52,921 nucleotides of DNA from Syncephalis fuscata S228 (lineage: Eukaryota; Fungi; Zoopagomycota): the NCBI GenBank assembly GCA_025786725.1, contig JAHLTZ010000072.1, positions 1 through 52,921 of the forward strand, read 5' to 3'. This document shows, one piece after another, positions 3,548 to 44,712 of this stretch. The notes below the pieces were generated by a model, which was given only the letters and a program-made list of their open reading frames with translations, was not told the DNA's origin and ran no database searches. The translations under genes were made by a program, and so were the position numbers. Every line of letters begins with the position of its first letter. The first letter of the stretch is position 1.

Positions 3548-5880
3548 ATAGTAGTAGTAGTAGTAGTAGTATGCCATTCTTTTATCATCGATTAATGAAA
3601 GCCGTTATTTATTGGGCCTGTGAAGAATCAGATCGATTGGAGCAATTACATACAGATCTTACGACAGTGGGTTCTCCTAGACATCGCGTATTTGGTCTAC
3701 CTCAGATATCATCGAGTACCGCGGCGACTGTTGCCCATTCACCTTCTGATTTATCGATGGGAGCCACTGCTTATGTTAAATGTCGACATCAATTATGTAC
3801 ACGATACATTAAGCGATGGATGTATACTAATTATGAACGGAATGCTGAACAATTCAATCAGTATGTTATTGAATATATCGATTTATGGTGTCGTTCATCG
3901 GATACAGCGCCTAGAATGCCCGGTCGTCGATCTATACCGACTAAAATGGGTGCAGGCGCGCCGGCCAATACACTTGTGCCATTTGGTCGTCGTCTTGAAA
4001 TACTATTAAGATTTAGAACGAATCATTTACTATTTGATTCATTTGAAAGTTTATTTACTCAATGGATCGATTATTCGGTAAAGCGATTAAATACACTAGA
4101 TTGTTTTGGATGGACGGTAATTGACTAAACGAGTAGTTTTATATAGTTACTAATAGTATTGATGGTGTAGAATCATACAATAACCAATGTATTGCCTGTA
4201 CAGCGTGTATTTGGTGAAGGTCGCTATCGACGTATGAGTAATACGTTAATGTTTAGTGTTGATGGACAACCAAACTTTCTTTCTTTAAACGATACAAAAT
4301 TACTTATATACCAAGGAGATATTAATGTAATAGTCTCACGCTTAGCCTTTTTGCAAATGTCTGGGTAAGTAATATGATGAATACTTGTAACGATACTGAT
4401 CTTTGTTACTATATTTTATTAGATTGCCATTGACTATTAAGGTGCTTCGATGGTTGGGCCAACAATTAGCTGAACATAAGCATAAGCTATCACCAAGTAA
4501 TGCCGTTCATAGTGTTTTACTTTTATGGCGTAGTTTACTTGCATCGGGTGATCAATATAGTATATTACAAGAAAATATTTTACCTATTTATGTAGCTGCA
4601 CTACATACTGGACAGATTAACTATCTGCGTTCTGTTAATGAAGATGAAGATGCACCTATTCAGCCAGAGTAAGTTACAGTATTATTATATGTAGTTAAAT
4701 ATATAACAATTAATACACTGAATATAGGAGCCGTCTTTTATTCCATGGTATTCTTGCTTTAATGCTTTGTATTTGTGGCTGTCTACCAGAAGAAGTAGAT
4801 GCATTAGAACTATTGCCACCTGTTCAATCGCAATGCGTGTAAGTGGTAATCAGTTACTAAAACAATTTGATACTTATTTAACTATTATATGTATATTTAT
4901 ATTTATAATAGTATTCCAGAGATACGATTACCAGAGACACCTAATGTTATACAATTAACAGATAGAACACCTATTGTACAACCATTACTTGATTTTATTC
5001 ATTTAACCCGACTTGACGATGTTTATGTAACCATTCAGACTGTGGATGTACTTGTTAAACATGGTCGACGTATTGCTCAACTATCGTCATTTATGCGTAG
5101 TGTACAGCCAAAGTTATTGGCACGGTAAGTATGATGACTATTATAATTGTAATTATAATTATTAATACATTATTATTAGTACATGGTCAGCGATGCAAAC
5201 TATGAATTCATCTTTAATAGAGTTTATTCTACCGGTGTTTTTTGCTTTAATCGATGCAGAACAAGCTTATTTCTATGAATTTATCAAACAATCATTTTGG
5301 GAGACTTGGGAATTAAGGTTTGTTGTTAGCAATCTCATTATTATTACTATTTGGTATTAATATATTATAATAGATATCAAGCATTAGATTCAACTTATGG
5401 CCTATTTATTAAACTAACAGATAATTATATTGAACAATTTAGCGATAATTTATGTCAGCTTGGATTTATTGTAACTCAAATGGTTCAATGTTTATGGGAT
5501 ACGGAAGTAAGTGTTAACAGTTTTACTACATTAGCTATAACAAGTTTAGGTAATGGTGGCCATTAAATCACGTACATTATTTGAAACGATGCCTGCACCG
5601 ACACGAGCCATTACTTTCCGTTGTTGGAATGATTACTTTTCCAAAGCAGATTCTACTGAACAAAGTAGTATTTGCCAAGTAATGATACGCGTAGCGACAG
5701 CATTTCCTAGTTGGCCTAGTAAGTTGTGTATTAAAGGATAAAAGGGAATATTTATATTAATAGTGGTTTAAATAGTACTTAAATGGTCTATTTTACTTGA
5801 TGGATTGGCCAATCATTTACCTCCTATTAAGATAGGGGTAAGTTAGTTGATATATACTTAATAATTTAATTGTAATAATT

Positions 5881-5919
<39 letters not shown>

Positions 5920-8900
5920 GGGAATGGAAGGAAATCAAACAACAACTTCCGATGCTTCATTATCTGATTCATGGACACCATCTAATGAAGAAAATATTCC
6001 GGTAATTAAACAACTAATGTTAATATTATATAGTATAATAACTAATAACTATAATAATTGATATATAGACATTTCTACTTACACTTGCCTATCGTATGCT
6101 AGCCCGTAAAGTGCCTATTCCTGCCTCTGACCTATGTACACTTAAATACCTTACTTTGATACAAATGGGTTTCCGTGACTGTTTTGTACGACGAAGAACC
6201 CAAGATGTGCAATTCGGCCAACTTGACTTTGATCCTCGTGATTTACGTCAACGGGCGGTTATACAAGTATGCGTGGCAGGCATGAATGAATTACTTGATA
6301 TCTACCATATTTCTCGTACGGGTGTTGAGTTACGTGAAAATAGCGATATTCATGAAGATGAAATTATTGGTACATCTTTCATCGATATCCTACTACAGCT
6401 ATATAATTCACAAGTGGATCTTACTCAATTGGAAGATACTATGCTACGTACCTGGATAGAATCTGTTACTTTAATTACTCACAAGGTAATTAGACTAGCC
6501 AGTTAATTAATTAACTAACTAACTAACTAACTAACTATTTATCTATTAGTGTAATGTTAATGATTCAACACGAATGGACGAGATTGCCGATATTGTTAAA
6601 CAATTAGCTCTATTACTTGATGGGCCTATATCAGCCGATAACCAGCTTCTTATTATCTCTACATTCTCACTGGTTCTCCACCATGCACCTAACATTATTG
6701 CTGCGGCTCTATGGCGTGTTGTGTGTTGTGTTGGTGCCTTACTAACCCGTCTACGTAATCATACGCATAATACACTATTTAACAAGGCTCGCTACTTTTT
6801 ATCACGAGCTATTTGTAAATTTAGTGATAGTGGTATCTTTTTATTAATATTTAAGGTAAGATAGAATGGCACCAATGGTAATGACACCTATCTAATATAA
6901 TGATATAATAGAATTCTCCAGCCCCTGGTTATATGATTGATAGTGTTGAGCAATTATCGCCGGATATTGACATGTTATTTGTTTTAAAGACAGTCATTAC
7001 CGATATTGAACGGCATCCACCGGATGATTACAAATCAAGTACACCTTTACGTGAGAAACCGGTACAAGATGTACTTACACGTATTTTTACGTTAAAGACA
7101 CTTGAAAAGTCTGGTGTCTCACGGATATTGTATAATATGAGTCGTTACATTAAAGTAACTTATCCACTACCATTTAGTGATCATTTAGCGACTGGTAAGT
7201 TTTAATTATTTTATCCATTTATTTATATTAAAGCAATTCATTATTAGAATATATCAGTTTTCTTAATCGATTGGCACGTCATACTGCTAATTGGGATCCG
7301 GTGGAGTTTAACATTATACCTGTATTATCATCAGCTGCAGTAATTCTACAAGAACATCCATATCATTTTGAGGTAATATATATATATATATATATATATA
7401 TAAGTAGTTATATCCATTCTATACTAATTATATTATTATTATTATTGTTGTTGTTACTTTAGACTATGATTAATGCTTCAATGACTATATTTCGACATTC
7501 ATTACAACGATTTGAACTGTCACGCACTGTAATGATTAATATGATTATGGCATTCCGTCAATTATCAAAAAATATGCCATCACATCAAGGACATCCAAAA
7601 GAGAATCCATTTGCTTCATGCATTCTTACTGAGGTTGAGTCACGATTAATTGGTCGTTCACGTATGTTGGCTTCAACGGCTGCTAATTGTATTGAGGTAA
7701 AATTAGACATTGAAATTAACTAATTGATTAATTATTACTAAAACGATTTATAGCTTATTACACTTGATATGCAAGGCACGGTATATCTAGGTGAAGAGAG
7801 ACTAAAGGCTAAACTACTATTTAATTGCTCATTAACCGATATTTGTCGATGTGCTGCACAATATCTACGTCAACCACTATTGCTAATCGATAATGAAAGC
7901 AATTTACGCTTAGCCACGACACAATTGCTTGTGTTTAACATGGAATACAATGGCATGCAAGTAACAGAATTTCTACAAGATAATGTAAGTGTTTACTACA
8001 ATTAATAAAATGTAATGTTATAATAATGATGTCTATTAGAATAATGTTAAAGGCGCATTGCAAGCACTATGTTGGCTATGTATCGCTACACTGGCCACTG
8101 ATTCTATAGTCATGTATCGTACATTATTGGGTGCTCAGCGTATTGCTTCATTGCTTACACTTGCCTTTTCTGCCGGTCATGGCCCTGAATTTAATAATAT
8201 TTCACGATTTGGATTTATTGCCGTTAAAGCTTTATCGTTGATGTATTGCCGTATTGCCGTTGTACCTCATCTACTTAATTCGAATCTTGATGCATTTGCC
8301 GAAGGTGAAAATAGTCTTTGGCAAGAAGTATGGCCGGTGCTAAAAGATCAGTTAATTATTCTATTTAATCCAATGTTTCAACATGGTGCCATTGATTCGG
8401 TAAGTAGAAACTATTATAAATTTATTAATAAATATAAGCCAATTACTGATTTGTTATTGTTATTATTAGAATGTTGAAAGTATGTGGCATGATTTTATTG
8501 ATATGATTGTTTTCCTACAACGAGCAAATGCACATGGGCTTTCCATCTATGCGGAACAATGGCCACTATTACTTGACAAATTCATGGAACGGGTATGTGT
8601 TTGCACAGTTATTACTGTTGCTATAATATACGAATACGTCTAATTAAATACGTCTATTATTGTGGATATATTAATAGCAACGAGAACAAATGGGTGCTGT
8701 CGACGCCAAAGTATCTAACGCTCGTCGCGGCATGGATGAACCGCCGTCAGAACAACGACTTGATGTACTATTGGAACGACTGCTTACCGAGTTGATTCGT
8801 GTATCGGTATTGGCCGGTCAATCTACAACGACACCTAATGCAGGAACTACTACGACCATAGGCTCGACAGGAATGAGCATGGGAGGATCGAAGGGCGGTT

Positions 8901-11014: not shown

Positions 11015-11714
11015 GATGATGGCAGTAGTATAGATAGTAGATTTGTTAAAGAGCAAGGATTGTAAATAAACAGCTATAGCTTGTGTTTGATAGACGATAG
11101 AGCAATGTAACAAGCTAGGAACGAAAAGAGGAACGATAATGTTGGCGTCACCTGTTCAAGCAGGTAGAGGTCACCTGAATTAAAGCGTTTTCGTCATCAT
11201 TTTTATATTGCTATTATTAGTATTGTGTTATGTGGTGATGATGATGCTGAAAATTAGCGTATCATAATTGCTATTACTATTACTATTGTGTTATTATTAT
11301 ACACACTATTTAGTATTCAAATAATTATAGTGTATTTTAATAAAGGTGACAGCACGTACACCTCGATATTTATTCATTATTTCTACAATCGTTCAAACTA
11401 TAGAAAAGCACAGCAATAAAACGATGATAGAGATTGGTAGCATGAATAGTTGTAGCAAAAAATAAAATAAACACTCAGTGCCTAGGTATTTGAAGCAGCT
11501 GTTGGTTCATTGATGTTAAATAACAGCCATTTCTAATAAGTGGCCAATTCGAGTCATGTTATTAGTCTACGAATTTATTGGAACTAGTAGCAGTAATAAC
11601 AACAAGGATAGAATAATAGACTATCTTTGATCTATTGGCTATTATTTGATTTATGCTATTATTTGGCAACGATTTAAAATTACTATAATAAAGTACAAGT
11701 TAGTTATTAAAATT

Positions 11715-12857
11715 CTAAATTATTAATCTGCGTACCTGAGCAGAAGGGCGGATAGAACGACGAGCAGTCTGAGTCACTCTTCCGTTGTCTCTGACCGTTT
11801 CTATTACATTAAGATTGTTGGCGGCCTTAATGTTGCTTGCTCTGACGGTAATCAAATCAGCTCGTCGGACATTTTGATTAAGACGGCCGTTATCGCGTAC
11901 AGTTTCCAAAACATTGACATTGTTTAATGCACGAAGATTTCGCAGATCGACTGTAGCCAAGCCATCACGACGCACGTTTTGATTAAGGCGACCGTTATCG
12001 CGTACAGTCTCCACGGCGTTGATGTTATTGGCTGCACGAAGATTTCTTAAATCAACAGTGGCCAAACCATCACGACGAACATTTTGCGTAACGCGGCCAT
12101 TATCACGTACAGTCTCCACGGCATTAATATTATTGGCTGCACGGGCATTTGGAGCATTCACAGTGATAAGGTCGGCACGACGCACGTTTTGATTTAATTG
12201 ACCATTATCACGTACAGTCTCCACGGCATTAATGTTATTGGCTGCACGGAGATTTCGTAGATCAACTGTGGCCAAGCCATCACGACGAACATTTTGCGTA
12301 ACACGACCGTTGTCGCGTACGGTTTCCAAAACACCGAGATTGTTCAATGCGCGGAGATTGTTTAAATCAAGGGTAAGTAGACCGTCACGACGTACATTTT
12401 GCGTAACACGGCCATTATCACGTACAGTCTCCACGGCATTGATATTATTGGCTGCACGGGCATTCGGAGCATTTACAGTGATAAGGTCGGCACGACGCAC
12501 GTTCTGGTTCAGTTGGCCTTGATCGCGTACAGTTTCCACTGCGTTGACATTATTTAATAAACGAAGGTTCTGAGCACGTACAGTGATAAGGTCATCACGA
12601 CGTACGTTCTGATTTAATTGACCATTATCGCGTACCGTTTCCACTGCATTAATGTTATTGGCTGCACGGAGATTTCTTAAATCAACTGTGGCCAAGCCAT
12701 CACGACGAACAAGCTAGATGGGAAGTACATTAGCTACTAAATTATTATACAACAAAGCATTAATAAATACCCTTTGGTTTACATTTAGCACTGTTGGTGC
12801 TGCATTGCTGACGGCTACAAGTAGAGCAACAACCGAAAAAATAGATTTGATTTGCAT
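11715..12857 (-). CDS. Secreted Kex2-processed repeat protein (KEP): signal peptide plus nine 35-aa repeats each ending in RR; 361 aa
   Basis: Exon 1 (12857-12771) encodes MQIKSIFSVVALLVAVSNAAPTVLNVNQR. A 57-nt GT-AG intron (12770-12714) has a GCTAAT branch point. Exon 2 (12713-11715) encodes LVRR, 9 x [DGLATVDLRNLRAANNINAVETVRDNGQLNQNVRR-like] and a 13-aa tail. Confidence 0.9.
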
Positions 12858-13185
12858 AATTTCGAAAAATAATAGATGTTGTGTGATGAAAGTATTAACG
12901 AATAATAGCCAGTCAAGCTAAATAACGGACGACAGTTTGCGCAGTTTTTGTTTAAAAGGTTCTAGAAATAATTGCGGATTGAATATGATTTAAGCGCAGA
13001 ATAGAAAGCAGTCAAAACTATTGGAATAACAAAACGCTGCAGTAAAAGAACGCGAGATGAGATGATTGTCGAATAAAGCGAGGCTATGTTGCAATTCCTC
13101 TTTATAGTAAAATTGTAGTATTTACAAACTACTTATCGCATACAATTGTATTGGCGGAAGTGTACAAGTGTTAGTAACATTGAAA

Positions 13186-13678: not shown

Positions 13679-15863
13679 TTATGCATAAGCTTTCAACGGC
13701 TTTGATTCAGAATTGTCGGATGGACCTGATGTCGCGACAAATTGAAGGAAACGTAAGTTATTATCCATTTTATCCTCAAAAACTGGAGCTGAAGGCCGGC
13801 TTTCTACTGCAGCATCGACTTGAGGCGTGTCCGGGCTGTTAGTTGCATAACCGTGCGGTTTCTGGAATGGTGCTTTTTCAGCTGTAAAAGCTAAATGTGC
13901 GCCTTGATCTGACTGCAAATTTTTCCAATTAGTATTAGATGTGTGCTCAATCGGATTTGGCGCTGATGAAGATTGTTCAGTTGATGTAGAAACCGATGCG
14001 GCTTGTGATTTTTCTTGCTGTTTGTTGTCATGTTGAAGAGGCTTTTGCTCGGTATCACTAGCACTATGGGTTATCGTGCCAGTCGATTGATTCGCAGACT
14101 GATATGCCATAGGTGCTGCTGTAACAGATGGTGTATTTACGTGTCCGATAAATGTGTCTGGCTTAGATTCATCATTTGCTAGATGTCCACTGCTAGTGGC
14201 AGATATGATAGACTGATTAGGAATAACGACTTGAGATGATGTTATAGGACGTTGTGGCCGTTCTTGTACTTTTCCTAATGTTTTAGTCGATGCAGGAGTG
14301 TTTGTTGCTTGAGGAACAGGTGGCTGTGAGATATTAGTATTAGTATTGTTTGGCACATCTTGTGGCTTGGGCGATTGTTTTGAGTTATTATAGTAGGCAT
14401 TTGCCTTAATATTATCACTATTACTGTGACCTTCATTAGCCACAGCATTTGTTTCGGCTTCTAGAATAGCAGTTGCTGGCTGTGCAGTAAATCCATTATT
14501 TAGGTTATGTTCAAAAGTATCAACAGTGCCTGCTTCTGACGCTAGTACACCTGCTGGGGGGTTTGTAGCTTGTGTACCATAAGCAGCGTTTTCTGCATGA
14601 ACACCGGCTAGATCAGGATGGGCTATTTTGGCTGAATCATTGCCGGGCCGCGTCGAATAAGCTGCTGCTTGTGTGTTTGTTTTTAGACGTTGTTCATCAG
14701 TAGCTAAAACTTGGAAAGCTAAGTTTGCACTGCTATTAACATCTGATGTCGATGGCTGATACTGGGGGGCTTCAGTAGCTGATTTATGTACAGTGTTGGC
14801 TGATGCATTTATAGACTGTGATGATGGAGTACTAGCGGTTGATGGTGCTGTTGTTATTTTTTCTGAAACGTTGTTTACTTCGCCTTGCGTATTATATCCT
14901 TTTGGAGCAGCTTTATTTACTTCAGCTGCATTTTCAGGTATATTTTTTTGTTTATTAGCAAAAGCTGCTTCAATTTTTGCGGCGGATGGAGTAGTCTCAA
15001 CAGTCTGAGTATTGACCATATTGGCTGCCATAGCACCATAACCATTTGATATCACAGCATCTCCACGGGCACGTTGAGTATTTGTATCATCAACTGCAGA
15101 GTATGTTAGAGATTTGGCCTTAGATGCTGGCATCGTCTCCTTATTGTTGCTGGTGTTTATGTTTGTGCTTTGTAATGCCGTAGAATCTGCCTGTAACTGT
15201 GCAAAAGAGTTTGGGCTTTCATTGTTTTGTCCATTAGAAGAGCCATAAACGCTGCGGCGTCTTTGAGGACGGTCTTCGTTAACTATATTAAGTGCACTAA
15301 CGCTTTGAAGTGCATTTAAATTAAGCAATGGAAGAAAATCCTCGCTACGACGCGCCAATCGATGCATTCCTTGTCCTGATGGCAAATAAGTCACAGCTTG
15401 GTGAGAGGTATCCAATGCGCTAAGTAGACTTTCCAAAAAGGAATAATGTTGATTCTCTGGTCTAAGCATTATAGTACGAATAGCATTGTCTGTTGTACCA
15501 AACGAATCAGCACTATCTTCAAGTGACCATTTTGAAATTCCGGATCCAGAAGGTGTGTAAGTACTTGGCCATTGGGCTAATTCGCCATCATCTTTAAAGC
15601 CAAAATGTTCTTCAATCAGATTTTGTAGCTGCAGTTGATTTATTGACTAAATAAATGTTAAATATTGAAATAAAAGCAGTTTAGCTATTTACCTTGATAA
15701 TATTTTCGTTCGACAACATTTGTTCTACCGATAAACAAGCATCAACATTTGTAGCACACTTTCTATTAAAAAATCGTAATGGCAAAGCATTGCAAGATGG
15801 TGTGATGGCGGCAGCGGCCAATACGCTAGCGGCAAAAATCAGAGTGAACTTTGTTGAATGCAT
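13679..15863 (-). CDS. Secreted Ser/Thr/Ala/Asn/Gln-rich low-complexity protein (about 712 aa) with dibasic sites
   Basis: Exon 1 (15863-15693) has signal peptide MHSTKFTLIFAASVLAAAAITPSCNA. A 46-nt intron (15692-15647) joins in frame to the 596-aa ORF. Confidence 0.8.
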
Positions 15864-16623: not shown

Positions 16624-17684
16624 ATGTCTGACGTCGAAGCGGTTGCTAAGAACTTGGAGGAGACTAAGCTAGATGATCAGCCTGAAAATGCTGAAGAGGT
16701 AGGATCAAAGGGGGATTGGCTGGACAGGAGAGGCGTGGTGGTTTGTTTATGCTGTAATCAAGCATTGCTAGCTGATCAAATCTTATCACGGCTAACGTGT
16801 AGACAGATCGAGTAAATAGGCTGTAGTAATGACAAGTTACTAATAGTTTTTATTGTGTGCAGGAATTGGCTTTTGACCCAAGTATGAAGAAGAAGAAGAA
16901 GAAGAAGAGGGTGGCAGATGTAGCTGCAGAAGATGCAGAGCCTACTGAAACGGCGCAGCCTGCCGAAGAGGCTGCCGAGGACGGTGAGGAGGCTGAAGAT
17001 TTTGATTTCAGTATGAAGAAAAAGAAGAAGAAGCCAAAAAAGAAAGTCCAATTTGAAGGCGAAGAGGACGAAAACGTAGGCGATGTCGATGCTGAAGCAG
17101 CCGAAGACGGTGACGAGGCATTTGGTGACGAAGCTGAAGATGCTGACGAGACAGAAGCGACCAATGTTGCTGATGAACAGGCCTGGCTTGGTTCTGACCG
17201 CGACTATACTTATCAAGAGTTGCTAGGACGAGTATTTAACATTCTACGTCAAAAGAACCCAGAGTTAAGCGGTGAAAAACGTCGTTACATCATTGCACCA
17301 CCTGTTATGGAGCGTGATGGTAAGAAGTCTGCATTCTCTAATATTGCCGATATATGCAAACGTATGAATCGTCCTATGGAGCATCTTATTCAATTTTTGT
17401 TGACGGAATTGGGTACTACTGGCTCAGTTGACGGTAGCAATCGACTTATCATCAAAGGTCGTTTCCAGCAACGTAATATGGAACATATGTTGCGTCGTTA
17501 TATTCGTGAATATGTTACGTGCAAGACGTGCAAATCACCAGATACCATTATCACCAAAGAAAATAGGCTCTTTTTTATGCAATGCGAATCCTGCGGCAGT
17601 ACACGGTCTGTTGCTACCATCAAATCAGGCTATGTTGCCCAGACTACGAAGCGTTCGGTACTTCGTCGTGCGGCTGGTCAATAA
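16624..17684 (+). CDS. SUI3: Translation initiation factor eIF2 beta subunit
   Basis: Poly-Lys boxes ([20 protein letters not shown]), [35 protein letters not shown] and the C4 zinc finger CKTCKSPDT...CESCGS. Exon 1 is 16624-16698 and the main exon is 16863-17684. Confidence 0.96.
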
Positions 17685-18455: not shown

Positions 18456-19175
18456 TTAAATCTTTAGTGCTCTAAGACCTTCAAGTCCAACCTTTGGTGG
18501 GGGTGGAGCTGGAGTAGATGGAGCCTTTGGGGCCGCAGCCGGAGTAGGTGGAGTGACTGGAGCAGCTGGGGGCGGGGTAGCTGGAGGAGTAGCTGGAGCA
18601 GCTGGAGGTGGGGTAGCTGGAGTTTCAGGTGCTGGAGCAGGAGCAGCTTCTGGTGTGGTAGGAGCAGATGATAAGCTAGCAGGTGGGAATGCAATACCTG
18701 CTGGAGGGAAACTAAGACCTGCTGGAGGGAATGCAATACCTGCTGGAGGGAAATTAAGACCTGCAGGTGGGAAGCTCTTGATAAGTCCCCCTAGACCTTT
18801 AATAATTTGGCTTTCCGCAACACCGGCAGGTGGGAAGGTTACGCTTGGTGGAAGAGTTAGTTGCAAAGCCGATGGGGATGGAAAGCCAGAAGGCGGGAAG
18901 CTCGTCACAATATCAGTAATTGCCTTAACAAATTGACTATCTGTGAAGCTGGCTGGAGGAATAGCAGGAGGGAAGGCGGGAGGGAAAGCAATTGGAAGAC
19001 CGGCTGGTGGCAGCTTACTAACAATACTTGCAAAGTCAATGCCCTGTTGAGTGGTAACCTTATCCGATTTACGAGAGCCATTTTGGACTGCATTAATTTG
19101 TTGTGGTGCCGCTGACACAAGTGACGTGAGACAAGCCGACACGGCGACTACCGAAATCAATGCTAGTAGACGCAT
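18456..19175 (-). CDS. Secreted proline-rich protein with FPPA(G) repeats and a Pro/Ala/Thr tail
   Basis: Signal peptide MRLLALISVVAVSACLTSLVSA, intronless 239-aa ORF, repeated FPPAG(L/I)x heptads. Confidence 0.8.
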   Translation of the reverse strand: MRLLALISVVAVSACLTSLVSAAPQQINAVQNGSRKSDKVTTQQGIDFASIVSKLPPAGLPIAFPPAFPPAIPPASFTDSQFVKAITDIVTSFPPSGFPSPSALQLTLPPSVTFPPAGVAESQIIKGLGGLIKSFPPAGLNFPPAGIAFPPAGLSFPPAGIAFPPASLSSAPTTPEAAPAPAPETPATPPPAAPATPPATPPPAAPVTPPTPAAAPKAPSTPAPPPPKVGLEGLRALKI

Positions 19176-19846: not shown

Positions 19847-21416
19847 ATGCTATTCGGCATCATATTTCTTTTCTATCTGTTCGCTATTTATGTAATGAAG
19901 CCTGTTCAAATCTTTTCAGTAATACTGCTTGCAGTATTTCTGCTATTGCAATTGGTTACTTTTTATTTGGCGCAGCATTACCAACACTTACCTGCGATTC
20001 GGCATCGTTCTCTCTCCTTTACCCGTATTCTATTAGTAAGCTACACCCTTTTAGTAACAAACACTTTGTTGGCACTTGGATTCCCCCAAGTTTATCCGTG
20101 CATGTTAAATCCATGGGTAGGGGGCGTTATACTTCCATCATGTTGTATGGTAGTGATTTGTCGATTCTACCGACTAGCAGCACTTTATCGATGGAATGCT
20201 CGAGAGCTACAGAATTACGTAAAACCACGGCCCGTTTCGGCACTACTGGAGAGTATAGAAGATGAAAGTTTACCTAAAGGTCGACTCTTGAAAGTTCAAG
20301 GTCAAAACGACTCTGCTACTGCCGTTACAAGGTAATGATATTAATTATAATTCACCCAGAGTTTTTGTTGATTTTATTTGTCATCACTAAAATTACAGCC
20401 ATGAAATTATGTCTTCTGCCGGAGCAATCGAACAAAAATTAGGACTCGTAGATCGATTACTTGATGCGTATACTGACCGCCGAGCTATCGCATGCACTTT
20501 GATGGTAGCAGCTATTTTGATAATACCCAGTTTATTGATTACCATTCTTCGACCGTTTCATGATTCACGGCCAATTCAGAACTGTGTCATCAACCTCATT
20601 GACATGTTACCGATACTCATTTCTACACTGTTGATTGTAGGGATTGGTGGTGGCTCTATTGCATTACGTGTGCTACAAGCACGTGATGCTTATGGTATTC
20701 GAGCTGAGCTAATCGCCTCTGTAGCTATATCCTTAATTTTAATAACCCTATCAACATTATGGGTCGTTTATTCATATGCCAGCAACTCAGGAAAACGATT
20801 AGCCAAGGATCGTCTAAAATTTTACGACATTTCCGGTTTGCTCAATGGAATTGGTTTTATTGTATGTCAGTTCCTTATTGTAAATTATCCAACATTAATG
20901 GCTAGCTGGAATGCACGAAATAGCTTGTTTGCACAAAAAGACCTTAATGCCGTAGTTATTCGAATAAGATATACGGCAACAGGTCACCTATCCTTTGTAA
21001 GCGATTTACCAGCTTATTCAAAACAATTTGAAAAGTTACTTGACGATCCCTTAGAGTTAGCGTCATTTCGTAGTTATTGTGTTGGCTCGTTTTCCATCCC
21101 GGCCTGTATTTTTTATGAAAAATTTAGTACATTACAACGACAATACAATGCGGATGATCCTAATAGCGGCGTGTTACCTCATTTACTTCCGCAGTTTGTA
21201 GATGAATTGGAGGTTTTATATCGCGACTTTATTGTTACAGGTGCTCCGTTACCACTAACATGTATATTGCATCCAGCGACACTTAATATGCTGCGCAATG
21301 CCTATAATAGGCGCCAGATATGCTACGACTTACTGAATGATGCTGTGATCCAAGTCAAACAGTATCTTTACATCTGGAGCTATCCTGACTATATAAAAGC
21401 TCAAAATAACAAATAG
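19847..21416 (+). CDS. Multi-pass membrane (7TM-like) protein with C-terminal RGS domain
   Basis: Hydrophobic helices with IRHRS, YPC and RDAYGIRAEL motifs typical of fungal 7TM-RGS proteins. RGS-like segment FEKLLDDP...FRSYCVGSFS...FYE...LYRDFIVTGAPLPL...SYPDYI. In-frame intron 20332-20398. Confidence 0.8.
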
Positions 21417-21716: not shown

Positions 21717-22153
21717 GTATCAAATAAAGTGTGTTTATTATATTGTTACAAAACCAGGTTTATGATTTTGTAATGTTTGCTTAGCAACCAAAATAGAAGA
21801 AGGGGGTAATAGATGTGGTTTATTCAAATGTTAATTACTTAAACTAATAAAAATTATTAATTTAATAGCTTAACAACTCTTGTTATCAATAAATGGCTTT
21901 ATTCAGTAATCTAACACAGAAGTCTCGACTGTATTGATATAAAAGTAAGCTATAAGTAATTAGAAGTAGAAAAGTTATTTATTTCATGTTTAGCGAGCGT
22001 ATTAAGTATTTATAGTACTATCGGCGATTAAATGGCGAGTAAATGCAAAGGACCCTGACGAGAAAACCTTAATTAAGATACAACAAAGCTTAATTTGAAC
22101 GTTGTTGAATCGTGACATTTTAAGCAATAACAACATTTAAATAGCATGTTTTA
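21717..22153 (+). repeat. Inverted repeat A, left arm (437 bp)
   Basis: Reverse complement of 28616-29052 (GTATCAAATAAAGTGTG...AAATAGCATGTTTTA). No mismatch noticed by eye. Confidence 0.92.
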
Positions 22154-22272
22154 TATAATTTTCATGTAATGTTTAAATTTATTACTATTGTCATTGCTAT
22201 TATAATAAAAGATGAATTTGTTGATTTAAAGTGCTATTTACACCAATAATACACAATTACACTAAAACAAAA

Positions 22273-25200
22273 TTAGCGCTGCATTCCAGAACGTTCTTGC
22301 GATAGCTTAGACCACGGTTTTTCTGGACCCTCTAGAATGCAACCATTTGTTAATGCTATTATACTACTAAAGCTATTTCATTACCTTGGGCTGGTTCGGA
22401 GTATCCTGAAAAACGGTTCATCAGCTTTGCGCTTTTATTGTTTCTTGCCTGCGAGGTAAGCTGGCGTGATTGCCAGTTATCTCCCCATGGATTTTGTGTA
22501 CTACGCAATGAAGGCTTAATACTACTAGATTCGCCATTAATGCTTTGTCTTTTTCGAATATTGGTTGTTGGAGACTGATTAGAAGTGTTTGGAGGCGTTG
22601 ATCGTCGCGCCTTATTCATCGATGAAACAGTAGGAGACATGTAGTTGTTGGAAAGACGATTTTGCGCTTTCTTACCACCAAGTTGTTCACGATATACTGG
22701 ACGGCCTTCTATTGATTTGGTAGGATGGAGATAGCCTAAAAAATTAATTTTTTAATAAATAATCGTTGTTAATATGTTACTTACTAAGAGATTTTGCAGT
22801 GTTGTCCGTTGAATGTATCTGCTGTGCAGCTTCACGTCCAACCCGTGCAAACATCTTATCAAGCTCTGAAAAGTATAAATGCAAATAATTCTTTAGTGTG
22901 CCATATGGAATATCTTCATTAGGTGGAATGCTGTGAAACGCAAGCTCCTTTTCTAATCGAGCATTACCTAATGGGATTTTAGGCAGACTGTTACGTCGGC
23001 TGTGTTTCTCCATAGCTCTGGCACGACGTAGGCTGTGAACAGAATGGCGGGGCCTAATACGATATATAAACGTTCCCCATGGCTGCTCATTCTTCAAGTC
23101 AACGTCGTAAAATGCCAGTTCTCGATTTAACTGAGCAGTTGTTAATGGCGTTTTTCTTGCTGTCAATCCATATGTTTTCTCGTCGTGTCGTTTATCTTCG
23201 TTTAATATTTTGCATAGCTTTTTAGAATGTGAGAATGTACCCCACGGTTGCTCCTTGTCTAGATTTACATTGTAAAATGGCAGCTCATGTAGTTGAATGG
23301 CATCCTGCGTCTTCATATCTGGCATTACTTTATGCGATTTCTTGCTTCGTTTACCCGTTGAAACAAAAGTACCCCATGGATGTTCTTTATACAAATCAAC
23401 ATCGTAAAATGGCAGCTCATGTAGTTGAATGGCATCCTGCGTCTTCATATCTGGCATTACTTTATGTAATTTCTTGCTTCGTTTACCCGTCGAAACAAAA
23501 GTACCCCATGGATGTTCTTTATACAAATCAACATCGTAAAATGGCAGCTCGTGTAGTTGAATGGCATCCTGCGTCTTCATATCTGGCATTACTTTATGTA
23601 ATTTCTTGCTTCGTTTACCCGTCGAAACAAAAGTACCCCATGGATGTTCTTTATACAAATCAACATCGTAAAATGGCAGCTCATGTAGTTGAATGGCATC
23701 CTGCGTCTTCATATCTGGCATTACTTTATGTAATTTCTTGCTTCGTTTACCCGTCGAAACAAAAGTACCCCATGGATGTTCTTTATACAAATCAACATCG
23801 TAAAATGGCAGCTCGTGTAGTTGAATGGCATCCTGCGTCTTCATATCTGGCATTACTTTATGTAATTTCTTGCTTCGTTTACCCGTCGAAACAAAAGTAC
23901 CCCATGGATGTTCTTTGTACAAATCAACATCGTAAAATGGCAGCTCATGTAGTTGAATGGCATCCTGCGTCTTCATATCTGGCATTACTTTATGTAATTT
24001 CTTGCTTCGTTTACCCGTCGAAACAAAAGTACCCCATGGATGTTCTTTATACAAATCAACATTGTAAAATGGCAGCTCATGTAGTTGAATGGCATCCTGC
24101 GTCTTCATATCTGGCATTACTTTATGTAATTTCTTGCTTTGTTTACCCGTCGAAACAAAAGTACCCCATGGATGTTCTTTATACAAATCAACATCGTAAA
24201 ATGGCAGCTCGTGTAGTTGAATGGCATCCTGCGTCTTCATATCTGGCATTACTTTATGCGATTTCTTGCTTCGTTTACCCGTTGAAACAAAAGTACCCCA
24301 TGGATGTTCTTTGTACAAATCAACATCGTAAAATGGCAGCTCATGTAGTTGAATGGCATCCTGCGTCTTCATATCTGGCATTACTTTATGTAATTTCTTG
24401 CTTCGTTTACCCGTCGAAACAAAAGTACCCCATGGATGTTCTTTATACAAATCAACATCGTAAAATGGCAGCTCATGTAGTTGAATGGCATCCTGTGTTT
24501 TCATATCTGGCATTACTTTATGTAATTTCTTGCTTCGTTTACCCGTCGAAACAAAAGTACCCCATGGATGTTCTTTATACAAATCAACATCGTAAAATGG
24601 CAGCTCATGTAGTTGAATGGCATCCTGTGTTTTCATATCTGGCATTACTTTATGTAATTTCCTGTCTCGTTTACCCGTTGAAACAAAAGTACCCCATGGA
24701 TGTTCTTTATACAAATCAACATTGTAAAATGGCAGCTGATGCTGCAGCCGTTTAAAAGATAATAACACCGGTTTGTATGTTCTCTTTCTATGTCTTTTAA
24801 GTGAATTAAATGTTCCCCAAGGCTGCTCTTCGCTCAAGTCGATGTAATAAAAAGGAAGCTCTTCTTGTAATTCCTGAGTTGATAATTGCTTATTTAGAGG
24901 TAATTGATTATCGAGTTTGGATTTGGCCAGCGCTTTTTCGGATTGTTTACGCTTTTTCAAATGACCAAGAAGCGCTACATTTTTCATACTTTGCTTATGA
25001 ATCATATTATCGAGAGTACCATATGGAATAATCAATTCATCACAGAAAGGTAGTACATTCCATTTTAGATCCTGATATTCTGCTTCTATAGTCGCATGGT
25101 CAGCTGCAATTTTTGTCGGTTCATTATTTACAAGACGTCTTTTTCCGGCAGTGGCAGCAATAGCACTCACATCCAAAGTATGGGCTGCATTCATGGCGGC

Positions 25201-28024: not shown

Positions 28025-28304
28025 ACTGTACTTTAACTTCCACATTTTTATTTACTCCTTTCACCATATTTTTCTTATCGCTATTTTATTGTTCTATTCA
28101 ATAATATATTATACGATAATGCTGAATATAAAGATATAAATAGCATGTGAACATCAATAAAGAACATTATTTGATCCCTAGTCTTTATTTCTCTTATTTA
28201 CATTAACACCTATTCAAGTAATCTCAACGGCATGCCGTATATTCTGGTTACAACTGTCGCCACAAGATTTTTCTGATGAAGACACCCAGCCTATCATTAT
28301 TGCA
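28025..28304 (+). repeat. Inverted repeat B, left copy (about 280 bp, diverged)
   Basis: Reverse complement similarity to 33771-34052, e.g. GCCGTATATTCTGGTTACAACTGTCGCCACAA versus TTGTGGCGACAGTTGTAACCAGAATATACGGC. Confidence 0.85.
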
Positions 28305-28615
28305 AACGCTTAGTTATAAAAAGTTTCAGTTACATATATATAATTATTTTAATTTATTAAATAAAATTTAACGTTTTTTCCTCTTTGTGCATATTTACAT
28401 TGTTACAATTACTATTTAAAGTCAACAATAAATGTATTAATATTAATACTTTGTATTATTAAGGTGTATCATTTTTTGTTTTGGCAGATGCCATTATTAT
28501 ATATTTTTAACAGCTAAAACACATTCAAAATGTTTAAATGTCACATTTATTTGACCAAATACTATAATTTAAAAGCATATCGCATTTCAATTAAATGATT
28601 TTCAATTAAACTTTG

Positions 28616-29052
28616 TAAAACATGCTATTTAAATGTTGTTATTGCTTAAAATGTCACGATTCAACAACGTTCAAATTAAGCTTTGTTGTATCTTAATTAA
28701 GGTTTTCTCGTCAGGGTCCTTTGCATTTACTCGCCATTTAATCGCCGATAGTACTATAAATACTTAATACGCTCGCTAAACATGAAATAAATAACTTTTC
28801 TACTTCTAATTACTTATAGCTTACTTTTATATCAATACAGTCGAGACTTCTGTGTTAGATTACTGAATAAAGCCATTTATTGATAACAAGAGTTGTTAAG
28901 CTATTAAATTAATAATTTTTATTAGTTTAAGTAATTAACATTTGAATAAACCACATCTATTACCCCCTTCTTCTATTTTGGTTGCTAAGCAAACATTACA
29001 AAATCATAAACCTGGTTTTGTAACAATATAATAAACACACTTTATTTGATAC
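28616..29052 (-). repeat. Inverted repeat A, right arm (437 bp)
   Basis: Reverse complement of 21717-22153. Confidence 0.92.
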
Positions 29053-31704: not shown

Positions 31705-33770
31705 CACTATAATTTCAATAAATATGCCTATAATTCTAGATAATTACATCTGGTTGCACAGTATTTTTACCACCAACTTACCTTCATCTAAGACAACTGT
31801 TGTTTTAGATAAAAATATTTAATGTATTTGTTTTGGTTACACACGCATTTTACTTTTAATTTTCTATGACCATCGTCACCATCTAAATAAAGTATTTATA
31901 TGATTTTTATTATTTATAATAACTATGACTGTAATGTAGATTTATTTATTTTTGATACAAAGTGTTAATATGATTGTAGTTAACATAATACAGGTTATTG
32001 TTACTTTATATTATTAAAGTGTAAAGCTTTGACATTTGATGTTAAAAATACGTTAATATTAACACTTTGTGTTAAAAATGCACAAATGTTACTATTTATT
32101 ATAATTGAAGCAAAATTTAAAGCTTTATTTTCCTTACTTTAACCTAATAAATTATTTTTTATTAAATTAGTTAGTTAGGTAATTAGATGGATAATTAGAT
32201 AAATAATTATATATTTATGTAGTTAGGTAGTTAAATAATTAATTAGTTGATTTTTTAATTGTTTAAAATGCCATTTATTTAGTCAGATTGGCTATAGAGA
32301 AAATGGCTGTTTAATAAACAATTTTTATAACAATTATATTAATATTAATCTTACATCATAGATGTGCTCAAAATGTAATAGTAGAATATTAGAAAATGAA
32401 ACAGACCATTCAGATGCAAAAATCCACACAGTACGTAGATGCAATAACAACAAATGCGAGATAAAATGAAATATCAATCATATGGCTTTTATATATCTAC
32501 ACTATTATATATCATTATATGATAAATCGAACACATTATATTGCTATAAGTTTCAATTACATATAGTTTGTTAAGCAAGTGAGGTAAATAAGTTGATATT
32601 TACTAATAAGAAAGCTAAAACAAAAAAACAACTGCAATAGTTAGCGCGTATATACTAGACAATAAATGACATACAATATAAATAATATGCGATGCAAAAT
32701 GTACGATTAGCAGCGTTGAAGTTATTGAGCATATATGCATGATCAATGACCGACATTAGTCGACATTTATAAATAATAAAGCTAGAACAAAAATAAAATA
32801 GTTTTGGATAGAGGAGGCTAGGCGAGTATAGAATAATATATAAAATGATAAATGTATGGTAAGAAAGTATAAGAAATAATGTTGAAGTTATAGTGCATAT
32901 AATGCAATGAGTGGAATGAGTAAAGTATAATGGAACATATAAACAATAGTGTATCTAGTATGTTATAAAATGATATATAATAGTGCGAGACATGTTGGAA
33001 ATGATATAGGTAAATGGTGGATATATGCATACTGGATAACGAATCTATGATGACGAGTATTTGATGACTGATGTCACTCACCACCCATCATCATGTTCAA
33101 TAGATTGGGCGTTATTAAATATTAGTCATTTGTCCCCAAAAAAGCAATAAGTGTGATGATGTGACGATTAAATAAAACTCACCACTTGTCCCATGTTCAA
33201 AGATTGAATGTGCAGTTCAATTGCGCGAATGTTATCAAAAAAAGTCATTGACCCCCAAATCATATTAGATTATTAATAAACTGTTTACTATTAGTGTAAC
33301 AACACTTGTTACCATGATGGCTAAACTTTACTTTAACTCTCACGTCTGGAGTGTTCAAAGCAAAATTCGTTCCAATTGAAGTCGTGCTGTTATGCACAAC
33401 AAACACAGGTATAATGTTTTCATTTGATTACTTTTCAATTCACGAAGCCAATCATTATTGTTGTTGGCTATGTGTAGAAAAATTGATCGAATATTAATAA
33501 AAGGCATTGATTGCAATTTCATATCGTTCCGCAGTTGCTATTGTTGTTACTACATACAGCATAGATTCTTGCGTCTGAATGGTCTCTTTTATTTTCCAAT
33601 CTTCTACTGTTGCATTTGAGCATATTTGCAATGTAAAGTACTTGTCTATGGGCTAAAAGGTAGGACAACTAGCGTTTCTGATGTTCACTATTCTCGAGTA
33701 TTCTTGGTATCAACTTGGTAGGTACAGTTTATTTGCCAATCATTGATGAAGCAAATTAATCTCCACCATA

Positions 33771-34052
33771 TGCAATAATGATAGGCTAAGTGGTTTCACC
33801 AGGAAGATATTGTGGCGACAGTTGTAACCAGAATATACGGCATACCATTGAGGTTACTTAAACAGGCGTTAATGTAAATAAGAGAAATAAAGACTAGCGA
33901 TTGAATAATTTTTTATTGATGTTCAAATACACATGCTATTTATATTGCTATATTGGCATTATCATATAATATATTACTGAATAGAACAATAGGATAGTAA
34001 TAAGAAAAAGATAGTGGAAGGAGTAAATAAAAAATGCGGGTCAAAGTACAGT
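33771..34052 (-). repeat. Inverted repeat B, right copy
   Basis: Reverse complement similarity to 28025-28304. Confidence 0.85.
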
Positions 34053-35041: not shown

Positions 35042-38000
35042 ATGAGCCTGCCTACAGGCTATAGCAACGCCTCCACAGGCGGTGGAGGTGGTAGTGGCGG
35101 TAATAGTGGTGCTGCTAATTTATCAACGACCGCTGCTACTACCATCAATAATTCTGCAGCAGATCGGCTACAGCATTCTAATTCGCAAAACTCTATCAAT
35201 ACTTTGACAACTAATCCTGCTACCATGAATAATCCACAGGCTCATAATTATATGCGTGGTGGGCCTCAACCTAATACACGCCATCGTACAACTACAACAG
35301 TAACACGGGGAAATCCAAAGGACATGAATGGAGACACAATTCTTATTCTTTCGCTAATTAATCGATTAGGAGCAAAGGTAAGCTTTATTAATGGATAACC
35401 GTACAATAAAATAACTAGATTTATAACAATTATAATAACATTAATATTATCGTCTAGCTTCCATCTAATACGAGACGTCGATTGGAAGCGGTTGAATCTG
35501 ATCCTATGGTGCAGTTAACCATTCGTTCACTCGTTGATCTGTCGCAGTATCGTTTAACAACGGCCGCACACAGTTTAATGACGTTATTGGAAAATGTTAA
35601 TAAGGTATGCATTAATTTAGATAATAATTAAATTAAATAATTAACTAATCTATTGTAATAGTCAATATCAATTATAAATGACGATGGACCATCAATCGAT
35701 ATTTTACAATCACAATTGCTTATTCTAAAGGTTCTAGGTGCTTGTATGTCACATCATTGGCGCTGTCATCGCGATACACAGCGTGAACGTAATCGAGCTA
35801 CCAATAATGGATGTGATAATAATCCAATGTCTCCACATTCGGCATCAAGCGCACAATCTTTTAGAAAACGCAGCGAATCTGACATTACCATGCATCCAAC
35901 ATCAATGCCTAAATCTGAATCAAGTAGTTCAATTAATAATTTTGATACTATTAGCCATGGTAGTCATACACACTCGACTAGATCCTACACAATGGCCGGA
36001 ACAGAAGCACCAGTTGGATTGGATGCATTTGAATCGACTCGAGTGGCAACATCGCGTCAAAGCCTTGAAGCCATTGCTGCTCAAGCTCATAGTACTTATG
36101 AAGATCCGCCTGCATTGGAAGAACCGTTAGCCAAATATATATTCCATGTAGTGGCTAGTTTCTTACAAAATACCTCGCCTGATGTTTATGATGCACATGC
36201 TGCGGCTGGTGGTGCTGCATTAGCGGCAGCTATGGTAGACAGCCCCGATGTATATGGAAAAAGTACGCATCATCCAGCGTCACTTTCATCGGCTGGCGTA
36301 GGCGGTGGTGTAACGTCACCAACTGCTACTTCTCACGGCGCAGCAGGAACTGGTCGCGATTTTCTTACCTCTACCTATGCAGCATTAGCCGATGCACCGG
36401 CCGACCTGGCCTATGAAATCCATCGTGCTGCAGGTCGGGTGTTGTTCTACGTTAGTGCATCCAACTGGCCGGTAGTATTTGCCCGACTTAAAGCACGCAT
36501 TGCTGTATTGGCCCAGACATCAGACGAAAATGCCGATACAGGTGAAGTACGACTATTAGAATGGTGTAATTTGAATTCACGTCGATTGTCAATGGTACTG
36601 CAAGGTAAATAGATAGAATCGACTATCATTAATTAGCATTTATCGTCTAATACATGCTTGTTTTAGAACTTGGTACAGTTTTTCTTCAAATGAAACGTTC
36701 AGCACAACAAGTTACTGCTGTTGTATTAAGACGGTCTATTTGGAACTGGATTGAGGTTTATCCAATGGATTTCGCTCAACTATGTCGTTCACAAAAGCGA
36801 CTTGAAGGTGGTCCAGAAATTTTATTTGATCAGTGTAACTCGGTTGCCGATAGTCATCGACGTAAAATGGTATTTTGGCCATTACAAGCAATGCTACTTG
36901 TCCTCTGTCCGGATATTTTATTGAATATTGTAGAATCGGATTTGATTAAAACGACAAAGAAAACGCTATTCCTTGATTCATTGAAAAAGTCGTTAAAAAG
37001 CAACAAATCGGCTGAAGTTGCCGCCATTGCTTGTGTTGATTTGTGTAAAGCAGCCACTTACACTAATCGAGAAGAACAATTGGCACTTTCGACCATTGTA
37101 ACTGATATAGAGAATGAATTACGCGTAGGTAGTATTTTGCACACCAAATACAATAATCTAATCTGATTTAATTTAATTTAATTAGGATAAATTATTTGAC
37201 CCACAAAGACCATTCCTTACTATGAGTGGCGCGATTGATCAACGTTTAATGACCGAATGTTTAACAGCTTTATTTCGCTCAAGTCCCCACAGCACACTTG
37301 AGTCGCTAATTCCTATTTGTTTGAACGACAATACACATACCGTATTTCGACTTGTACTAGTAAAAAGTTGCTATCTAATTGCATCAGAAAAACAGCTAGC
37401 TTGGAATCCAACCATTTCTAGTATGTATTCCGTGTTGGCCACACCACTTCGCCTATTGCTGTTGCAGTCAAATATGTCACATGGACAAGAAGGTGCCATG
37501 TCATCGGCACCTAGGGGTGCTACAAATAACCGTGGACCATTTGAACGTAGATTTGGTCGACGAGCACAAGTAGCCGCTCTTTTGGCCGAAGAAGCCAGTG
37601 AACGACACGAAATTGTACTTAATATTCTTAAACTATACCGCACTGATCCACAGCTGGCCGTCTTTAACCAGAATCCGCATACGCAATACGAAGAGAATTG
37701 TAATCTTATTACGGCAATTACTAGCTGGCTACACGATCCAGATCCATTGATTCGTACTAACGCTGCAGAGGCATTGCTTGAATTGCACAAACCGGCCTTT
37801 ATTAACCAATGGGGACCACCGCATCTTATTATGAAATCATTTTGGAGTATTAGTTCACAGGTAATGCTGGCGGTGGCCCGACATATTCTTAACTTTAAGG
37901 AGCGTGAAGATGGTACAAGATATGCACTGGAATTATTGCAACAATTACTTGTACGACGTAATGAATTTCTTCGTGAACACCAAGAGCACTGCACAGTAGG

Positions 38001-44000: not shown

Positions 44001-44712
44001 AGCGGCCACATGTCAACGATATGTTTACCACCAACTTTCCATTTGCCGTGGCCACCACCGTGCTTAAGGGTCTAAAACACTCGCAAACCATTACGGCCAC
44101 CACGGATGCACTTACTACCTTTTTGGAGATTAGCGCACAAGAACCGAGTAAAACGGTGGATCCCAATTTACTTGGTTATTTAGCACCATTATTACCAGGT
44201 GCAGCACGTAATTCGGCCCTTAAAGATCTATTTTGGATTAGTGCGGTGGAAAGCGACTTTGAGAACACGGAAGGTGAACAAACTTATCATTGTCTCTTTG
44301 ACAAGCTAGCCATTCCTGATCAAACGACAGCGATGCTACTGGTGGCCCTTATGATCACTATGCTTAATAGTGCCGAGTATGAAGCGGAACAACTATTCCT
44401 TTATGGCTTTTTGGCTGAAGCAGCCACTGCAATGCCTCAAGTATTTGCCATGTTCTACGATAGTCTACTACCCAAGATGAATCAAATGCTGTGCAATAGT
44501 CAAGTAGTACCGATTATCGAGTCGATTCAATCGATTCTATTTACCATGGTATCATCGCCCTACTTGAAAGGACAACGAGCACAACGAGCACCCCCGATGA
44601 ACTTGGCTTTGGTGGTCTGGCCGAGAGTGGTTCATTCCAACACGTAACGCGTGCTCAAAAGAAAACGGCAGCCGATTTGGCCAGTCGTACCGTTGAACGT
44701 ATGGTAACCTAA
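35042..44712 (+). CDS. NF1: Neurofibromin / Ira1-Ira2-like Ras GTPase-activating protein (RasGAP, Sec14-PH, HEAT); several apparent frameshifts in this assembly
   Basis: VSASNWPVVFAR, IWNWIEVYP, FWPLQAMLLVLCP, TGRVAQQKRIRKMLR, arginine finger VFRRNCMATK, FLRFF, RRGLLLITKVIQNLAN, RPSDVPGTLLNMALLNLGS, EPHLTLEFL, NPAIQPRAFVVLGCL. The C-terminus ELGFGGL...MVT* ends at 44712 in a shifted frame. Confidence 0.95.

Follow-up and report, generated by a model that had tools for sequence, protein, structure and literature searches.

The question raised by this locus is what a fungus might do with nine related, asparagine-rich peptides strung head to tail in a single secreted precursor. The gene lies on the minus strand of the window, the 52,921-nucleotide stretch of DNA that was analysed, and a preliminary description made from the sequence alone had read it as a Kex2-processed precursor from an early-diverging fungus whose peptides might form a surface amyloid. 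The source is indeed such a fungus, Syncephalis fuscata (Zoopagomycota), the eIF2-beta encoded at 16857-17684 being 100 % identical in protein, and members of its genus live as obligate biotrophs parasitic on other fungi (PMC13188720; PMC6784888). Since the window aligns at 97-99 % to the S228 contig JAHLTZ010000006.1 of GCA_025786725.1, it represents the same species in a different isolate or haplotype. Kex2-processed repeat proteins (KEPs) are defined by a signal peptide and at least three tandem repeats of 8-100 amino acids between KR, KK, RK or RR sites (PMC7329392). The gene described here has nine 33-aa cores between RR sites behind an N-terminal signal peptide, which was called heuristically and is like the leader in three other species. 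KEPs are commonest in Zoopagomycota, at 11.6 per strain (PMC7329392), and the architecture alone is therefore unsurprising.

Structure of the precursor gene and its repeat array

The gene begins with an ATG at 12857 and contains two short introns (Table 1). Exon 1 comprises 29 codons and encodes a hydrophobic leader with a basic n-region, a best 11-residue Kyte-Doolittle mean of 3.1 and small residues before AP, so that the signal peptide reported to be hidden behind an intron is upheld as a heuristic prediction. The position of the first, GT-AG intron is common to S. plumigaleata and Thamnocephalis sphaerospora. The second intron, with canonical donor, branch point and acceptor, directly precedes the stop codon, and the product is consequently 355 rather than the 361 amino acids first proposed, the longer model running six codons into this intron. 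Both introns applied to S228 give 87+57+768+53+3 = 968 nt and 285 aa, which is the exact NCBI gene call. A single TATAAA, comparable to the possible promoter element of the window, is also found 234-256 nt upstream in two other Syncephalis species.

Table 1 Features of the precursor locus and related loci (window positions unless stated otherwise)
Feature	Position	Strand	Basis or remark
Possible promoter element TATAAA (putative)	13101..13106	-	~250 nt upstream of ATG
Exon 1: predicted signal peptide (~residues 1-19, 12857-12801) and short pro-region	12771..12857	-	Kyte-Doolittle heuristic
Intron 1, 57 nt, phase 0, GTATTT...GCTAAT...CTAG	12714..12770	-	reproduces NCBI gene length in S228
LVRR, first dibasic site, fits LxxR, ends pro-region	12702..12713	-	motif from PMC8528282
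Unit 1 (35 aa = 33-aa peptide + RR), protein identical to unit 5	12597..12701	-	
Unit 2, starts DDL	12492..12596	-	
Unit 3, starts ADL, protein identical to unit 6	12387..12491	-	
Unit 4, starts DGLL	12282..12386	-	
Unit 5, protein identical to unit 1	12177..12281	-	
Units 6 and 7, 210-nt stretch absent from S228	11967..12176	-	
Unit 8	11862..11966	-	
Unit 9, most divergent, ends ARR	11757..11861	-	
C-terminal tail, seven residues, after last RR	11736..11756	-	
Intron 2, 53 nt, phase 0, GTACGC...CTAAC...TAG, directly 5' of stop codon	11683..11735	-	matches NCBI model of S228
Stop codon TAA of two-intron model (355 aa)	11680..11682	-	
Upstream secreted, low-complexity gene (712 aa in S228)	15863-13679	-	no Pfam match
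28-aa Leu/Asn-rich peptide between RR and RRR in upstream secreted gene	15263..15346	-	
Subtilase with S8, PA and fn3_5, not a kexin	48908-51281 (domains 49269-51281)	-	Pfam
Thamnocephalis RR-delimited repeat precursor, cut by contig end	8-459 of its contig	-	

The array (12701-11757) was detected by TRF as a 105-bp repeat with a score of 581 and consists, as originally described, of nine gapless 35-aa units each closed by VRR or ARR. The units lack cysteine, as had been noted, and aromatic residues as well, and the abundance of Asn (~20 %) is accompanied by Val (13.5 %), Leu (12 %) and Ala (11 %). The peptides are ~40 % aliphatic and 18-30 % Asn+Gln, with a net charge after trimming of -1 to +1, calculated masses for the trimmed 33-mers of 3491.8-3734.1 Da and GRAVY values of -0.2 to -0.56, making them hydrophilic overall. 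The mixture is wider than the DGL- and ADL-types initially envisaged, as seven distinct 33-aa peptides are encoded including DDL- and DGLL-starting forms. The proposed alternation of polar and apolar residues holds only locally, the beta-period hydrophobic moment not being above that of shuffles (z -0.4 to 0.0), and the helical hydrophobic moment likewise does not exceed shuffles (z at most 0.85).

Units 1 and 5 and units 3 and 6 are identical in protein, as first reported, and differ at 8 and 5 nucleotides respectively, all of them synonymous. Across the array pN was below pS in all 36 unit pairs (means 0.20 and 0.66), and orthologous units of the window and S228 are separated by 12 changes at 182 synonymous sites and 2 at 553 replacement sites. 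The S228 copy has seven units: the 210 nt of units 6-7 are missing, and two of those it has (1 and 5) resemble mosaics of related ones. These patterns indicate that the peptide is under purifying selection while the copy number of the array changes; selection on the peptide, rather than recent slippage, had been put forward, and the first half of that statement stands whereas array turnover evidently also occurs.

Syntenic orthologs in other Zoopagales

Relatives of the gene were found by synteny, protein-library searches having been blank. Pfam searches of exon 1, exon 2 and the ortholog pieces gave nothing above the cut-off, and word-indexed homolog searches, run with exon 2 against candidates of 183-581 aa and with a three-species alignment, returned no match. 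A full HMMER scan of 1.84 billion representatives yielded two bacterial repeat proteins only, which we rejected as summed compositional matches lacking RR periodicity and lying in bacterial gene context. The S228 ortholog was also missing from this result, although the called S228 protein scores 393-551 bits on the profile, and the called genes at S. pseudoplumigaleata 4264-4884 (single-exon) and S228 contig 5008-5975 are missing from the searched protein collection. Because the S228 ortholog was missed too, blanks in the protein libraries do not prove absence, those for low-complexity proteins calling for particular caution, and the finding that no relative turned up in Pfam, the PDB or other databases is to be read alongside protein-library searches that overlooked a known ortholog. 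To gauge sensitivity, S. plumigaleata pieces of two units were scored on the same profile and gave E ~1e-7 to 1e-9; the S. pseudoplumigaleata fragment did not score. Metagenome, bacterial genome and viral DNA scans and Rfam produced no match, a PDB sequence search gave nothing meaningful including no match to HET-s, and the unit motifs were not found in the supplements of two KEP surveys outside their large KEP tables. All searches were run exon by exon, the early exon-2 queries carrying six intron-derived residues.

Syntenic orthologs, unannotated in both cases, are present in S. plumigaleata and S. pseudoplumigaleata, with a unit identity between species of 30-40 % (32-39 % as measured). In S. 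plumigaleata (GCA_025201365.1) an uncalled gene between V-ATPase C and the same secreted neighbour as in the window shares the leader and the intron position and continues with HVRR and six 34-aa units. As assembled this gene is broken, the intron phase being off by one, unit 3 two single bases short and unit 4 carrying two extra. The accompanying substitutions in the frameshifted copy comprise 9 synonymous and 2 replacement changes and no stops, and the flanking housekeeping exons contain no indels. The many single-base indels alongside so few substitutions suggest read error in the repeat; the copy may also have decayed recently, since the neighbouring secreted gene is fragmented as well. 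On this S. plumigaleata contig (JAIXMF010000013.1) both adjacent secreted genes are frameshifted or fragmented (4822-8638), pointing to local assembly error or joint decay. The S. pseudoplumigaleata gene, uncalled and at a contig end, has the leader, directly abutted by a 36-aa first unit with a terminal VRR, after which a second unit begins.

Further afield, the first gene upstream of eIF2-beta in Thamnocephalis sphaerospora encodes a leader and a pro-region followed by an intron, then LRR and Asn/Lys-rich 36-aa units that end DRR and begin with Gln. The Gln start might allow pyroglutamate formation. These units found no match with the S. fuscata family by hhalign or BLAST, and their sequence similarity is marginal, the profile score being equalled by 83 of 2000 shuffles; over the first 24 positions, a stretch chosen after inspection, hydropathy correlates at r = 0.75, a value reached by none of 2000 shuffles. 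We consider the Thamnocephalis gene a probable member of the family. Synteny is lost beyond Zoopagales (Tieghemiomyces, Basidiobolus), and in a related metagenome contig V-ATPase C adjoins eIF2-beta with neither secreted gene present. Across species N15, N16 and Q31 are invariant and V6 and N18 nearly so, and the hydropathy pattern and aliphatic spacing are kept despite the low identity. Together these genes make up a conserved and previously undescribed family of probable Kex2-processed repeat proteins in the Zoopagales, and the class to which it belongs is known and very diverse.

Evidence for processing at dibasic sites

Kex2 cleaves after KR or RR and favours an aliphatic residue at P4 (PMC8528282). 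In the precursor RR occurs at the unit ends and before unit 1 and never inside a unit. The residue following an RR is D, A, N, S or Q and never Pro. S. fuscata units have six Arg-rich columns; Arg is found at the terminal two in 4 of 5 foreign units and at the four internal ones in none of the five. RR persists where its acidic neighbouring partners and every other arginine have disappeared. In S. plumigaleata the final unit lacks RR and runs into the stop codon after 32 aa, the length of its sister units once trimmed. A dibasic site also ends the pro-region in three species, and in the fourth the leader abuts unit 1. Because RR is kept, internal arginines are not and RR is dropped exactly at the stop codon, we infer that the precursor is very probably processed at RR, and the Kex2/Kex1 processing assumed at the outset thereby gains support from conservation across species. 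The first site fits the Kex2 preference fully and the internal sites carry Asn, Lys or Thr at P4. Fungi reported to lack KEX2 are mainly Microsporidia and a few Dikarya. The subtilase of the window (Table 1) has an S8, PA and fn3_5 architecture reported as expanded in Zoopagomycota mycoparasites (PMC6784888).

Comparison with known repeat precursors and amyloids

Like other KEPs (PMC6339444, PMC7329392) the S. fuscata precursor has a lineage-restricted sequence; unlike them it has long, fixed-length Asn/aliphatic cores without spacers that are conserved over at least three species. S. fuscata was not included in the KEP surveys, and the S. pseudoplumigaleata copy is an uncalled gene. No DUF3328/UstYa gene was found among the neighbouring genes scanned or called, which cover part of the exons of the window. 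This agrees with the preliminary description but says little about the absence of modification, as none of 185 Zoopagomycota KEPs had DUF3328 nearby (PMC7329392 Table 1).

Among the closest known parallels are Rep1 and the repeat region of Hum3 in Ustilago maydis, likewise pre-pro-proteins with dibasic sites and Cys-free peptides of ~31-55 aa. Kex2 cuts Rep1 into products of 34-53 aa that assemble as amyloid in the wall and serve attachment and aerial growth (PMC3133707; PMC4617103). The S. fuscata units match the lengths given for the repeats of Rep1, 34-55 aa, and Hum3, 31-36 aa (PMC4617103). As in Rep1, a mixture of imperfect copies would be derived from one precursor. In contrast to Rep1, which belongs to a different phylum, the S. 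fuscata precursor has RR sites, exact-length units and hydrophilic peptides, and lacks both the 229-aa terminal fragment of Rep1 and a hydrophobin domain. Fibrils and surface activity, here only proposed for the S. fuscata peptides, have been demonstrated for Rep1. Rep1 was not returned by the HMMER profile search, whose library also missed the S228 ortholog. The bacterial amyloids FapC and CsgA share with the precursor imperfect repeats of similar length and conserved Asn/Gln; their repeats however stay covalently linked while those of S. fuscata appear to be cut free, and the S. fuscata product would travel by a eukaryotic secretory route. No sequence match to FapC or CsgA was found in Pfam, PDB or bacterial genome scans. 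In Candida albicans Ece1 and its product candidalysin, Kex2 and Kex1 release peptides of ~30 aa, as proposed here. The segments of Ece1 differ from one another and candidalysin forms a helix that is both hydrophobic and amphipathic, whereas the S. fuscata units are homologous, polar and predicted to be beta-rich.

A hydrophobin was rejected as the units contain no Cys, eight conserved Cys being needed, and there is no Pfam hydrophobin match. A precursor of the alpha-pheromone type was likewise set aside, the RR sites being followed by DG, DD, AD or SI and not by Ste13 XA/XP dipeptides.

Predicted structure and proposed function

Two AlphaFold2 (AF2) runs gave a helix-free, 35-periodic beta stack, the first with pLDDT 79 and pTM 0.79 and the second with pLDDT 75. 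Common to both are a loop at unit positions 8-12, a long strand at 13-25 and a turn at NG, the differences lying around RR. The five AF2 models ranged from pLDDT 27 to 79. AF2 is known to build confident, unrealistic beta-solenoids from near-perfect and even random repeats (PMC11795689), and because of this over-prediction we regard the beta stack as weak support. In Foldseek searches against the PDB the CsgA and FapC fibrils ranked first without significance (E 0.044 and 0.012, probability at most 0.10), the best match at E 0.012 having a probability of 0.10 and a TM of ~0.14, and the Foldseek viral library gave no match at E 0.001. FapC repeats of 38-39 aa have conserved Asn/Gln and each contribute one cross-beta layer (PMC12392863). 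By analogy the Asn/Gln/aliphatic conservation and near-neutral charge of the S. fuscata peptides would suit in-register beta stacking with Asn/Gln ladders, and the amyloid reading of the peptides is a plausible hypothesis. The analogy to repellents is tempered by the negative GRAVY values and by hydrophobic moments not above shuffles, and peptides this hydrophilic make a weak case for a water-repellent film.

We propose a model in which the signal peptide would be removed in the ER and, in the Golgi, Kex2 would cut after each RR and Kex1 trim the two arginines, releasing nine linear, unmodified, near-neutral 33-aa peptides, one copy each, with seven sequences of 3.5-3.7 kDa. The peptides would then stack in register into cross-beta fibrils, each peptide forming a layer, with Asn/Gln ladders and small aliphatic cores holding the stack together, and these fibrils would coat or glue the surface of the parasite on aerial sporangiophores, spores or the zone of contact with host hyphae, as the Rep1 repellents do. 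Gene structure, conservation and selection are directly shown by the present data. Among functions we rank assembly into a surface fibre first, at about even odds; granted processing, we put self-assembly with a surface role at even or marginally better, and the whole chain from RR-processed peptides to a self-assembled surface fibre at slightly below even.

The peptides may instead, once cut, be soluble signals or host-directed effectors, acting in self-signalling, host recognition or modulation of the Mucorales host, with the repeats only raising the dose. This would be natural in an obligate biotrophic mycoparasite, and most studied KEP products are diffusible linear peptides; the Gln-starting Thamnocephalis units also recall Coprinopsis KEP peptides, in which Gln gives pyroglutamate, and 7 kb away, with conserved synteny, is a gene for an RGS-domain membrane protein. 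That linkage may however be ordinary synteny, at 33-36 aa the peptides are long compared with fungal signals, the Ste13 XA/XP spacer is missing, and what has been conserved is an Asn/aliphatic spacing rather than a distinctive epitope, with seven variants in one precursor. We consider a soluble role unlikely. An uncut or partly cut protein forming one covalent beta-solenoid (a CsgA/FapC-like monomer, an adhesin or an ice/surface-binding rod), with RR as a structural Arg ladder, would account for the gapless units without linker and for internal P4 residues not optimal for Kex2, and the intact chain as folded by AF2 shows an unbroken periodicity of 35 residues, with a strand across VRR-DG in the first model. 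Such folds are nevertheless a known class of artefact, and a structural ladder sits poorly with the retention of RR where acidic partners and other arginines have been lost, with its omission exactly where the stop codon supplies the end, and with its presence at the end of the pro-region before unit 1 in three species, making the uncut rod improbable.

Similar size, Kex2/Kex1 processing as in Ece1 and a parasitic lifestyle could also suggest candidalysin-like cytolytic peptides damaging the membrane of the host fungus. The negative GRAVY, lack of aromatics, net charge near zero, unremarkable helical moment and absence of helix from either AF2 model all argue against this, as does the need of a biotroph for living host cells, and we judge it very improbable. 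A precursor of modified cyclic RiPPs of the dikaritin type, which would have the same architecture, was rejected and is scarcely credible here, the 33-aa cores being far longer than dikaritin cores and containing no Tyr or other aromatic residue, with no DUF3328/UstYa among the scanned neighbours nor beside any surveyed Zoopagomycota KEP. The assembling, RR-processed peptides remain the reading that we favour.

Neighbouring genes and repeats

The upstream secreted gene is well conserved in three Syncephalis species only in its leader and its Leu/Asn-rich peptide, the dibasic flanks of which are kept in two, and on this basis it may release a second peptide. The Leu/Asn peptide was rejected as a homolog of the units, having no score on the unit profile; it could nonetheless be a minor or nucleating partner of the proposed fibre. 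A single-exon gene at 18456-19175 (minus strand) encodes a secreted Pro-rich protein with FPPA-type repeats that is syntenic in three Syncephalis species and has no Pfam match. The membrane protein with a C-terminal RGS domain is encoded at 19847-21416 (plus strand), has a weak 7tm_3 match in relatives and is syntenic in Syncephalis and Thamnocephalis, making it a candidate receptor-like gene near the peptide precursor.

Elsewhere in the window 445-nt inverted repeats at 21717-22161 and 28608-29052, 99 % complementary, AT-rich and with no long ORF, flank a 6.4-kb segment holding a BAR_4/PH_20 gene. This segment has the opposite orientation in S228, which may be either a real inversion or an assembly ambiguity. 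Inside the BAR/PH gene lies an in-frame array (23267-24741) of 11 copies of a 132-bp (44-aa) unit that are 97 % identical, and the opposite strand is also open for 508 codons. A large multi-exon gene at 35042-44647 (plus strand) matched in Pfam only HEAT and, weakly, MOR2-PAG1_C on the scanned exons; its translated ORFs look like a neurofibromin/Ira RasGAP. Degenerate inverted repeats (75-88 %) pair 28045-28304 with 33771-34033 and 32371-32480 with 33508-33617 in an AT-rich, gene-poor stretch and are possibly relics of mobile elements.

Implications for mycoparasite biology

The corrected gene model and the two unannotated orthologs are new here, and the family variants from two or three other species share only an Asn/Gln/aliphatic skeleton. 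Early-diverging fungi are mostly without hydrophobins (PMC6784888), which bears on how they coat aerial structures and adhere to hosts. Rep1 is the sole KEP named as an amyloid former in the reviews consulted, and narrow searches of a limited body of literature yielded no functional surface amyloid described from Zoopagomycota or Mucoromycota. A bolder and rather doubtful extension of the model is that Zoopagales mycoparasites independently evolved a Kex2-cut functional amyloid, in which each peptide would be one layer of a FapC/CsgA-like fibre, a covalent solenoid would be converted by proteolysis to a polymer of mixed peptides, and the parasite would use the fibre as a hydrophobin substitute or as glue to host hyphae. 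If the peptides are not amyloid, the gene would be an ordinary lineage-specific KEP. If they are, a functional amyloid released by proteolysis would have arisen convergently in Zoopagomycota, and the peptides would be candidates for a factor in adhesion by biotrophic mycoparasites.
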